From Macrostomum lignano (Eukaryota), in assembly GCA_002269645.1 (NCBI GenBank), contig NIVC01000227.1, forward strand, positions 310,001-374,000: 64,000 nt of DNA, read 5' to 3'. A program made the position numbers and the translations under genes. Below are positions 27,001-30,000 of the stretch, in pieces; within the stretch, counting starts at the first letter, position 1; each line of letters begins with the position of its first letter. Below the pieces are notes generated by a model. It saw only the letters and a program-made list of their open reading frames with translations. It had not been told where the DNA came from and ran no database searches.

Positions 27001-30000
27001 CTCCAATCTTGTTGTGTCTGCTGTCTCCAATCCTGTTGTGTCTGCTGTCTCCAATCCTGTTGTGTCTGCTGTCTCCAATGTTGTTGTGTCTGCTGTCTCC
27101 AATCCCGTTGTGTCTGCTGTCTCCAATCCTATTGTGTCTGCTGTCTCCAAAGCTGTTGTGTCTGCTGTCTCCAATCCTGTTGTGTCTGCTGTCTCCAATC
27201 TTGTTGTGTCTGCTGTCTCCAATCCTGTTGTCTGCTGTCTCCAATCCTGTTGTGTCTGCTGTCTCCAATGTTGTTGTGTTTGCTGTCTCCAATGTTGTTG
27301 TGTCTGCTGTGTCCAATCCCGTTGTGTCTGCTGTCTCCAATGTTGTTGTGTCTGCTGTCTCCAATCTTGTTGTATCTGCTGTCTCCAATCCTGTTGTGTC
27401 TGCTGTCTCCAATCCTGTTGTGTCTGCTGTCTCCAATCTTGTTGTGTCTGCTGTCTCCAATGTTGTTGTGTCTGCTGTCTCCAATCTTGTTGTGTCTGCT
27501 GTCTCTAATGTTGTTGTGTCTGCTGTCTCCAATCCTGTTGTGTCTGCTGTCTCCAATCCTGTTGTGTCTGCTGTCTCCAATCCTATTGTGTCTGCCGTCT
27601 TCAATCCTGTTGTGTCTGCTGTCTCCAATCCTATTGTGTCTGCTGTCTCCAATCATCTTGTGTCTGCCGTCTCCAATCCTGTTGTGTCTGCTGTCTCCAA
27701 TTCTGTTGTGTCTGCTGTCTCCTTCCCCGGTCAAGCGAGTCAAATGTCAAATATAACCGGTAAGAGCTTACAATATGATCTGCAGATATGCCTCTCCTGG
27801 CAGCAGCTTCTGCTGAATCATCTGACGATGACAATGACCGGGACGAAGACTCCTGGAATGACGAACCGGCTCTGGTGTTGGACTCCGGCTCGCTTCTAAC
27901 CAAAGCTGCCGTGATGTCGAACCGGTCCAACCTCTTGGCCAGCGTCCCTACCGTGGTTGGCCGGCCTCGTCACCAGGGCGTCATGGTCGGCATGGGCCAG
28001 AAAGATGTCTACGTTGGCCGCGAAGCTGCCGGACTCAAACTGGGAGGTGAGCTGCTAATTTTCAGTCATCGAAGCGGTCATTGTGTTAAATAGTCCTTTA
28101 ATTTGTCATTTTCTCATATCTAGTAATTAGATTGGTCATAGTGCTGCTTCGATAGCGTCATTAGATATATCACTGACGGTTAATCATTAGATGAGGCATT
28201 CGCTCATATCTGGTCATTAAATTAGTCATCGTCGCTTACCTGGTTAGTAAATCGGTCATCGTTTTTAATCTGATCAATAAATGGGTCATTGTCGCTTATC
28301 TGATTAATATATGGGTCATTGTCGCTTATCTGGTCATTAGGTTGGTCATTGTCGCTTATTTGGTCATTAAGTTGGTCATTGTCGCCTATCTGGTCATTAG
28401 GTTGGTCATTCTCGCTTATTTGGTGATTAGGTTGGTCATTGTCGCTTATCTGGTCATTAGGTTGGTCATTGTCGCCTATCTGGTCATTAGGTTGGTCATT
28501 CTCGCTTATCTGGTTATTAGGTTGATCATTGTCGCTTATCTGGTTATTAGGTTGGTCATTGTCGCTTATCTGGTCATTAAGTTCGTTATTATCGCTTATC
28601 TGGTCATTAGGTTGGTCATTGTCGCTGATCTGGTCATTAGGTTGGTCATTCTCGCTTATCTGGTCATTAGGTTGGTCATTGTCGCTTATCTGGTCATTAA
28701 GTTCGTTATTATCGCTTATCTGGTCATTAGGTTGGTCATTCTCGCTTATCTGGTCATTAGGTTGGTCATTCTCGCTTATCTGGTCATTAGGTTGGTCATT
28801 GTCGCTTATCTGGTCACTGGGTTGGTCATTGTCGCTTATCTGGTCATTAAGTTCGTTATTATCGCTTATCTGGTCATTAGGTTGGTCATTGTCGCTGATC
28901 TGGTCATTAGGTTGGTCGTTCTCGCTTATCTGGTCATTAGGTTGGTCATTGTCGCTTATCTGGTCACTGGGTTGGTCATTGTCGCTTATCTGGTCATTAA
29001 GTTCGTTATTATCGCTTATCTGGTCATTAGACTGGCCATTAATTTAAGCCTTTCAACATTTTGATCACTTACTTTTCAGCGGTAGTATCTTCTGCACCAG
29101 ATGTGCCACGGGGTGCGGCGGCAGGCAGTGAAGAACCAAGCAGTCGTTCTGAATATTCAGATGCTTCCGATCTTGAAAAGATGTCGAATGTTGATGATGG
29201 TCAGCCAATGCTTTTTGTATTTGTTTTTTAATCTCTAATTATGACTTATTCGAATTGCAATGAATCATAAACCCGCTACTTCAACTGCACTCATAGAGCC
29301 GAGATTCCTCTGCCTTGAGCCCGAATCCATGGAATCCTGCGAGGCAATGTCAATGCAAAAACTTCAACGTAAAATCCGTCTTTGAATTGATTAGAAAATT
29401 ATTGAATTTGTTTATAATTTTGTTTATTCGATACGATTTGCAGCATTGCGTTCTGATTTTGTTTTTTTGCAGACAAAGCTGAATTTGAGGAAGATGACTT
29501 TGATGAATACGGCAGGTCGCTGTTTGAGGAGTCGCTGTCACTAGCCTACCAGGCACCAGCTCGTAAGAAGTCTGATGCAATGCGCTAATTTTTTATTAAC
29601 GTACTTTTTTACAAGCTGAAAATCGGGATTAATGCTGTGAAAATTTGAAATAGAAATTTATTTTGCTGTCGTAAGCCAATACAGCAGACACAACAGGATT
29701 AGAGACAGCAGACACAACAGGATTGGACACAGCAGACACAACGGTATTAGAGACAGCAGACACAACAGGATTGGAGACAGCAGACACAACAGGATTGGAC
29801 ACAGCAGACACAACGGTATTAGAGACAGCAGACACAACAGGATTGGAGACAGCAGACACAACGGTATTAGAGACAGCAGACACAACAGGATTGGACACAG
29901 CAGACACAACAGGATTGGACACAGCAGACACAAACTGATTAGATAGCAGACATAACAGGATTGGACAGCAGACACAACGGGATTAGAGACAGACACAACA

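Follow-up and report, generated by a model that had tools for sequence, protein, structure and literature searches.

Why should the gene of a vault-associated poly(ADP-ribose) polymerase encode a small piece of actin, in which one loop has remained almost unchanged while the rest has drifted? The question is raised by a stretch of DNA of 64,000 nucleotides from the flatworm Macrostomum lignano (GenBank assembly GCA_002269645.1, contig NIVC01000227.1, positions 310,001 to 374,000 of the forward strand), which is called the window here and whose positions are counted from its first letter. An exon of this window carries a piece of actin that includes the DNase-I-binding loop (D-loop), and the gene to which the exon belongs is, as judged by its sequence, PARP4 (vault PARP). 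The function of vaults and PARP4 has been an open question for decades, and among the minute copies of hub-protein surfaces, which show extreme conservation, the D-loop piece is the clearest case.

The actin-module exon and its host gene

The exon is complete, 261 nt long and of phase 1-1 as read from its splice sites, with the acceptor AG at 27784-27785 and the donor GT at 28047-28048; a second in-frame acceptor lies 18 nt further 3' and would move the start to 27804. Its parts are the following.

27786 to 28046, plus strand: actin-module exon of the PARP4-like gene (AG/GT borders, in-frame exon chain, UniProt models A0A1I8J8J5 and A0A1I8HY60)
27806 to 27856, plus strand: acidic lead-in (an acidic run also lies 5' of the piece in most orthologs)
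27857 to 28027, plus strand: stretch homologous to actin residues 3-58 (tblastn, 33/57 identical, E 2e-13)
27956 to 28027, plus strand: conserved block V35-A58, that is, the D-loop (residues 39-51) and its flanking strands (22/24 identical to actin)

A tblastn search of the 64-kb window with beta-actin returned this single match (27857-28027, frame +2, residues 3-58) and no further actin-like segment. The identity is very unevenly distributed, with 22/24 residues of V35-A58 agreeing with actin against 10/30 of residues 5-34 (Fisher p=1.6e-5) and 0/14 of residues 59-72. The phosphate loop reads DSGSLLTKA where actin has DNGSGMCKA, and G42, V43, M44, M47 and K50 of the D-loop are all intact. In actin, G42-V43 is a protease site, M44 and M47 are the targets of MICAL, K50 is the residue cross-linked by ACD, and within the filament the D-loop of one subunit occupies the barbed-face cleft of its neighbour. 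An initial annotation, made from the letters alone, had proposed an actin-like fragment with a diverged phosphate loop and next strand and with an acidic run before it; all of these are borne out, its coordinates, 27786-28046, match the exon exactly, and most orthologs conserve the acidic run as part of the module.

Concerning the relationship with actin itself, the piece is homologous to actin and actin-related proteins (PF00022) over residues 3-58, with the D-loop block as the closest part, but it amounts to about 15% of the fold. The four-subdomain ATPase fold of about 375 residues is represented by residues 3-58 only, after which unrelated exons follow, and the phosphate-binding loop 1 of actin (D11-N-G-S-G15) is replaced by DSGSL. 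Because about 85% of the fold is lacking and the phosphate-binding loop is altered, the piece, to judge from its sequence, cannot be an actin and can neither bind nucleotide nor polymerise as actin does.

The host gene was read by splice-site chaining as 23 GT-AG exons on the plus strand, from 20036 to the stop codon at 37642-37644, which together form a single open frame (20036-37644). The PARP catalytic, VIT and vWA domains lie in this one spliced frame, as expected of PARP4. An exhaustive HMMER search with the exon gave as its top match the 1196-aa M. lignano protein A0A1I8HY60 (100% identity), named 'Poly [ADP-ribose] polymerase' in UniProt, whose cluster mate A0A1I8J8J5 aligns with the window at 100% over most exons. 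This mapping identifies the gene, at the level of sequence, as the M. lignano PARP4, as the initial annotation had supposed, with the actin exon contained in an independent public gene model. In both UniProt models the actin exon is joined after '...QADAK'; A0A1I8J8J5 takes it through the 27786 acceptor, omits the ubiquitin-like exon that precedes it in the window, and supplied two small exons that the splice-site reading had not picked up. The ubiquitin-like exon is absent from the UniProt models, and the frame is open with or without it. The 5' start of the chained model and of the UniProt models, 20036, falls inside the PARP region.

Age of the module and selection on the D-loop block

PARP4 orthologs (n=122) were retrieved with the whole Mytilus PARP4, of whose 1730 residues the actin piece makes up about 60, and the piece was found in 37 of them, from 24 genera. 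The carriers belong to Porifera, Cnidaria, Echinodermata, Hemichordata, Mollusca and Platyhelminthes and comprise bivalves, one gastropod, two hemichordates, two crinoids, one brittle star, six sponges, four cnidarians and the flatworm; none of the vertebrate PARP4s among the 122 carries it. The piece comes after the vWA domain and before the C-terminal vault-binding region and covers actin residues from about 2 to 58-72, extending in no ortholog past about residue 72; its near-invariant motif is intact in the window. The order in the window is vWA, ubiquitin, actin, Hsp70 and C-terminus, so that the piece follows vWA and adjoins a ubiquitin-like piece. The order of ubiquitin and then actin is common to the sponge Dysidea, the bivalve Dreissena, contig L005 and the window, and that of actin, then HSP70, then the C-terminus is common to the window, Magallana and Dreissena.

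Further homologous exons came from a word-indexed protein search with the exon, which returned 14 short open reading frames (ORFs), none full-length (leads P0001, P0003, P0007 and P0009). Several short metagenome ORFs represent the same exon, with a diverged N-terminal part, an intact D-loop block and an end a few codons past EA. The symmetric phase 1-1 is common to the exons of the window, L001 and L005, and the L001 exon is bounded by ag and gt. In L005 (ENA ERZ21788760 ctg97196l, 57.5 kb, GC 40%), the PARP4 gene occupies 512-15798 and encodes, after vWA, a 14-3-3 C-terminal piece, two ubiquitin pieces, three Snf7/CHMP4 exons and the actin exon; a 907-aa exon with a P-stalk-like EEESDECMGFGLFDD, Pol II CTD heptads (YSPTSPS) and FG-like repeats comes next, and then the PARP4 C-terminus.

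By these sequence comparisons, the exon represents, in the flatworm, an ancient PARP4 module that covers actin residues of about 2-60. The initial annotation had called it a captured exon, that is, an acquisition of the flatworm lineage, and this view is not upheld: the module, its position after ubiquitin and its 1-1 phase are common to sponges, bivalves and metagenome contigs.

The outline of the module architecture has been described before. For Capsaspora, Salpingoeca, Acanthamoeba, lancelet and sea urchin, Perina et al. (2014; PMC4245714) list PARP4-like proteins to which actin, 14-3-3 and ubiquitin-related domains are added, and since amoebae, Capsaspora and a choanoflagellate are on this list, the architecture predates animals. 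As described there, these clade 5 proteins have PARP, VIT and vWA followed by an 'actin' match and add-ons, and the window gene is a flatworm member of them; the exon itself thus belongs to a group noted in 2014 and is present in public annotations. The difference is that the passages of the paper considered here list domain matches, without the limit of about 60-70 residues, the D-loop-centred conservation or the other hub-protein fragments. In the literature searched, a description of the 'actin domain' as only a 60-70-residue piece, of D-loop-centred constraint or of the breadth of the fragment array was not found. Vertebrate PARP4 (vPARP) is similar in having PARP, VIT, vWA, a long disordered region and a C-terminal MVP-interaction region, and differs in having, among the orthologs retrieved, no actin, ubiquitin, Hsp70 or other pieces.

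For the identity profile, one sequence per genus was aligned for the 24 genera, with the following mean identity to actin.

Actin residues 5-34: 53%
Actin residues 35-55: 96%
Actin residues 39-51 (D-loop): 98%
Actin residues 59-72: 32%
Beyond actin residue 72: 0%

The focus of conservation on the D-loop and its two flanking strands, which the initial annotation had perceived in the window, holds in the 24 genera. In the P-loop, G15 is changed in 24/24 genera and N12 in 23/24 (Ptychodera keeps N12, with DNGSF), which argues against repeated gene conversion across the exon.

The comparison of synonymous with non-synonymous change that had been proposed beforehand was run on the 24-codon block of five homologous exons (window, L001, L002, L003 and L005). 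It had been conceived against host actin genes and orthologous PARP4s, of which the former are the wrong frame since the module is shared beyond flatworms. At synonymous sites, the differences have reached or approach saturation (pS 0.57-0.90), and non-synonymous differences are confined to codons S52 and D56. Since the synonymous sites are saturated and the peptide is fixed, this sequence comparison shows strong long-term purifying selection on the D-loop block.

An AlphaFold2 model of the piece, based on the ortholog alignment, reached pLDDT 68.5 and pTM 0.39. The less conserved actin residues 7-33 are predicted to form a three-stranded meander (pLDDT 77-85), and the invariant block is predicted to be without secondary structure (pLDDT ~55); the earlier statement that the fragment is too short to fold as actin was therefore right in substance. 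Conservation thus peaks where the predicted order is lowest, as expected of an interaction epitope and unlike a structural core.

Possible roles of the actin D-loop piece

The actin piece is accompanied by pieces of other proteins. In the same PARP4 region, orthologs have ubiquitin, the Hsp70 linker with the substrate-binding domain, the last helix of 14-3-3, Snf7/CHMP4, calmodulin-like EF-hands, the synaptobrevin SNARE motif, WH2 motifs (matches in Oscarella and Dysidea), FG repeats and Pol II CTD heptads. The ubiquitin piece of the orthologs usually retains LRLRGG, and the next residue is Pro in 11/24. A GG-Pro junction after ubiquitin resists deubiquitinases and normal processing. The tail of the ribosomal stalk (SDDDMGFGLFD) has a clear internal copy in 26/122 orthologs, with an exact DSDDDMGFGLFD in Amphiura, and the B exons of M. 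lignano align to the stalk-like motifs of orthologs in BLAST.

We propose, at about even confidence, that the actin D-loop is displayed as a binding epitope within a bait or decoy array of PARP4. The stand-alone actin N-terminal piece sits in a long, largely disordered region that extends from vWA to the C-terminal vault-binding region, and selection has kept its D-loop hairpin (residues 35-55) all but unchanged from actin. The piece would present the D-loop as a flexible epitope, as one unit of the array. The units appear to be copied from abundant, invariant hub proteins: in the window gene, they would be the ubiquitin-like domain, the actin piece, the P-stalk-tail-like motifs and the Hsp70 linker with its substrate-binding domain, to which the ortholog arrays would add the 14-3-3 C-terminus, Snf7/CHMP4, calmodulin-like EF-hands, synaptobrevin, Pol II CTD heptads and FG repeats. 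Whatever recognises the hubs may then be captured beside the PARP catalytic domain or in the vault; candidates are pathogen toxins, viral proteins and proteases for which a hub is a target or a requirement. PARP4 would in this way be a scaffold that serves as bait or decoy. Both the binding itself and the identity of any partner are inferred.

The bait or decoy array is favoured over the recruitment of endogenous partners because it would explain the heterogeneous, lineage-variable set of pieces, and because it fits the positive selection on, and the antiviral proposal for, the disordered exon of vertebrate PARP4. This exon (exon 30 in humans) evolves fast under positive selection and has been proposed to make viral contacts (PMC4038475).

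Several points weigh against this interpretation. It depends on sequence for every piece, and the bait and endogenous-partner readings predict identical sequence conservation. The window exon by itself falls short of the Pfam Actin (PF00022) gathering cut-off of 27, scoring 13.6 bits (E 0.025), and orthologous pieces reach 36-54 bits over profile positions 2-66 of 410 only, so that the actin identity is founded on the BLAST match and on the orthologs above the cut-off. The P-stalk-like and other short exons of the window have no Pfam match, the inclusion of the actin exon in M. lignano mRNA is taken from gene models, and the identity of the C-terminus as MVP-binding is taken from weak BLAST matches. 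Further, 85/122 orthologs are without the actin piece; some of these are truncated models, and others are likely real losses, the module being dispensable in some lineages, including vertebrates.

The alternative that survives best, although we give it only tentative credit, is an endogenous module for actin binding or cargo selection. The free D-loop hairpin would bind the hydrophobic barbed-face cleft of G-actin or filament barbed ends in a WH2-like manner or, in a variant, a conserved actin-binding enzyme or chaperone; PARP4 and vaults would thereby be tethered to the actin cytoskeleton or loaded with actin-associated cargo, and the other pieces would recruit their normal partners. More than half a billion years of identity between the epitope and actin suit a partner that is itself invariant, such as actin, and some orthologs (Oscarella and Dysidea) have WH2 motifs. 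Perina et al. (2014; PMC4245714) read the actin and actin-binding add-ons as a link to the cytoskeleton, and PARP4 affects which proteins join vaults, as its depletion alters the vault interactome (PMC12280208). WH2 and thymosin-beta4 motifs are comparable as short flexible binders of the barbed-face cleft, which the D-loop fills in F-actin, but they have no sequence relationship to the PARP4 piece, whose actin binding is putative. However, endogenous partners would leave the heterogeneous neighbours unexplained, namely the ubiquitin tail, the P-stalk tail, the synaptobrevin SNARE motif and the last helix of 14-3-3, and would explain neither the turnover of the set of pieces between lineages nor the frequent LRLRGG-Pro (11/24). 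If the partners were endogenous, the piece would explain the choice of vault cargo or the attachment to the cytoskeleton.

An intramolecular or regulatory role is unlikely. The piece would in this case be a pseudo-substrate or acceptor region for PARP, a site of regulated cleavage or oxidation that parts the catalytic half from the vault anchor, or a packing element. Its location in the linker between the enzymatic half and the vault-binding end would suit such a role, as would the retention of all of the protease, MICAL and cross-linking residues of the D-loop; however, no covarying partner segment was seen in PARP4, the conserved block is predicted to be flexible by AlphaFold2, and vertebrate PARP4 works without the piece.

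Finally, a neutral piece, that is, a recently exonised actin retro-fragment or a decaying pseudogene whose D-loop was kept by chance or gene conversion, is extremely improbable and the neutral pseudogene is excluded, as the initial annotation had argued in preferring selection: actin is prolific in retrocopies, the N-terminal half of the window exon is strongly diverged and degenerate tandem actin N-terminal repeats exist elsewhere (P0025 and P0041), but the same piece occupies the same PARP4 position in six phyla, its exon phase is common to the window, L001 and L005, its peptide is fixed where synonymous sites are saturated, the replaced G15 (24/24) and N12 (23/24) indicate that conversion has not swept the exon, and the reading frame is unbroken over 23 exons.

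The bait or decoy array can be carried further, with considerably more reserve than the display of the D-loop itself. Invertebrate PARP4 would be a vault-anchored bait array of lineage-specific minimal hub epitopes, which could give vaults an innate-immune sensing or sequestering function. The hub sources would be proteins that toxins or viruses bind, cleave or need as activating cofactors, the captured factors would end up near the ADP-ribosyltransferase and the TIR-like NADase TEP1, and the fast-evolving disordered exon of vertebrate PARP4 would be a remnant of the array. In concept, this resembles the integrated decoys of plant NLRs and the 'tripwire' regions of animal NLRP1 and CARD8, in which a defence protein contains a copied fragment of a host protein that pathogens target, so that an attack on the copy is detected; PARP4 is not an NLR, and the resemblance is a functional speculation. 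If the partners were pathogen factors, PARP4 would be an animal counterpart of the plant integrated decoys on a non-NLR scaffold.

In either case, the vague idea that the disordered region of PARP4 makes contacts is turned into concrete tests with defined peptides and mutants, for which suitable animals are available: RNA interference can be used in Macrostomum, and infection models exist in oysters, mussels, Hydra and Nematostella.

Other exons of the gene and its surroundings

The window is eukaryotic DNA with introns rich in minisatellites. The remaining features of the PARP4 gene are the following.

20036 to 20326 and 20969 to 21566, plus strand: PARP catalytic domain, two exons (Pfam PARP 1.6e-11; P0173 maps at 100%)
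22052 to 22555, plus strand: VIT domain exon (Pfam VIT 1.4e-32)
23491 to 23885 and 24624 to 25344, plus strand: vWA, two exons (Pfam VWA_3 6.4e-9)
25676 to 25777, 25897 to 26013 and 26182 to 26383, plus strand: three linker exons kept in PARP4 orthologs (BLAST, '...DEKFE..VDIL.Y.GWE'; splice chain)
26474 to 26794, plus strand: exon of a complete ubiquitin-like domain, phase 1-1, with the end MRLRGG and then a basic linker (Pfam ubiquitin 2e-17)
29080 to 34946, plus strand: ten short phase 1-1 exons of acidic disordered repeats (splice chain), comprising the next four entries
29080 to 29199 (A2) and 31217 to 31309 (A3), plus strand: A exons (splice chain)
29297 to 29368 (D1) and 31405 to 31455 (D2), plus strand: D exons (splice chain)
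29473 to 29562 (B2), 31557 to 31655 (B3) and 33692 to 33793 (B4), plus strand: B exons, P-stalk-tail-like (BLAST to ortholog '...EESE..D.GFGLFD' motifs)
32644 to 32790 (C3), 34486 to 34611 (C4) and 34794 to 34946 (C5), plus strand: C exons (splice chain)
35525 to 36279 and 36475 to 36667, plus strand: Hsp70 interdomain linker and substrate-binding domain, two exons (Pfam HSP70)
37214 to 37644, plus strand: last exon with the stop codon (BLAST to C-termini of PARP4 orthologs)

Since the exons from the ubiquitin-like exon through C5 are all of phase 1-1, each can be skipped with the frame intact. A nested or separate gene for the ubiquitin, actin and Hsp70 pieces was considered and rejected, as all the exons chain in frame with PARP4 and full-length orthologs have the same order. 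With the VIT-vWA region of the window as the query, only distant VIT-vWA proteins (<=34% identical) were returned, and an exact look-up of the ATG-to-stop ORF gave no match.

The Pfam HSP70 match covers profile positions 379-482 (7e-12) in the unspliced sequence and 379-560 (8e-13) after splicing, and this growth supports the Hsp70 splice junction. The Hsp70 piece of the window begins exactly at the interdomain linker, and its start is far more conserved than the remainder, as in the actin piece; a piece of linker and substrate-binding domain is also found in the PARP4 of oyster, Dreissena and Mytilus. A 720-codon ORF at 35482-37641 proved misleading, as a (CTGT)n microsatellite of about 500 bp in the last intron (36676-37179) is open in one frame.

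The last exon matches the extreme C-termini of the PARP4s of Dreissena, Mytilus, Branchiostoma, Magallana and Patiria at E ~1e-4 (BLAST, 122-protein set), with the motifs GL.SLG and LELG..W in common, and gave no match to the Pfam MVP-interaction family PF26156. By these sequence matches, the C-terminal region of the window gene is probably an MVP-interaction (MINT) domain.

The short exons stand in a duplicated A/D/B/C pattern, and nearly every intron from 26842 to 35250 contains a minisatellite. A 24-mer array at 26842-27722 returns as its reverse complement at 29681-30936, a 30-mer array at 28207-29030 returns at 30944-31142, and 14-mer arrays lie at 31678-32593 and 33846-34356. Searched one by one against Pfam, the A, B and C exons and the last exon had no meaningful match, and a likeness of the C exons to CHMP4 was dropped as unsupported. 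A blastn search found no paralogous copy of the actin exon region in the window, with minisatellite matches only, and the idea that the acidic head of the actin exon duplicates the A exons had no nucleotide support in blastn against the window.

About 10 kb 3' of PARP4, at 48144-54700 on the plus strand, another gene combines DUF4062 (TIR-like NADase family), NACHT and an NWD1-type winged helix, domain families that it has in common with the vault protein TEP1; at about 50101-50254, two large ORFs of this gene overlap in different frames, pointing to an intron or a frameshift. Between the two genes on the same strand are an MFS-transporter-like gene (38548-41910), whose long open frame includes about 1.5 kb of a 20-residue tandem repeat at about 39474-41023, and a retroelement remnant (44062-45655) with a weak integrase-core match at 44909-45655. 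Upstream, the minus strand has an F-box protein gene with leucine-rich-repeat-like sequence (10079-12035), and near the 3' end of the window an ORF at 62473-63237 on the plus strand has a weak C-type lectin match (21.7 bits, under the Pfam cut-off of 22.6).

Actin N-termini also occur in other settings. The metagenome protein P0029 has two D-loop-only copies and a putative N-terminal signal peptide, as judged by eye, and in the protist-like P0036 a vWA domain comes after the actin piece. The tandem degenerate actin N-terminal repeats of P0025 and P0041 show no conservation of the D-loop and provide a useful neutral contrast.

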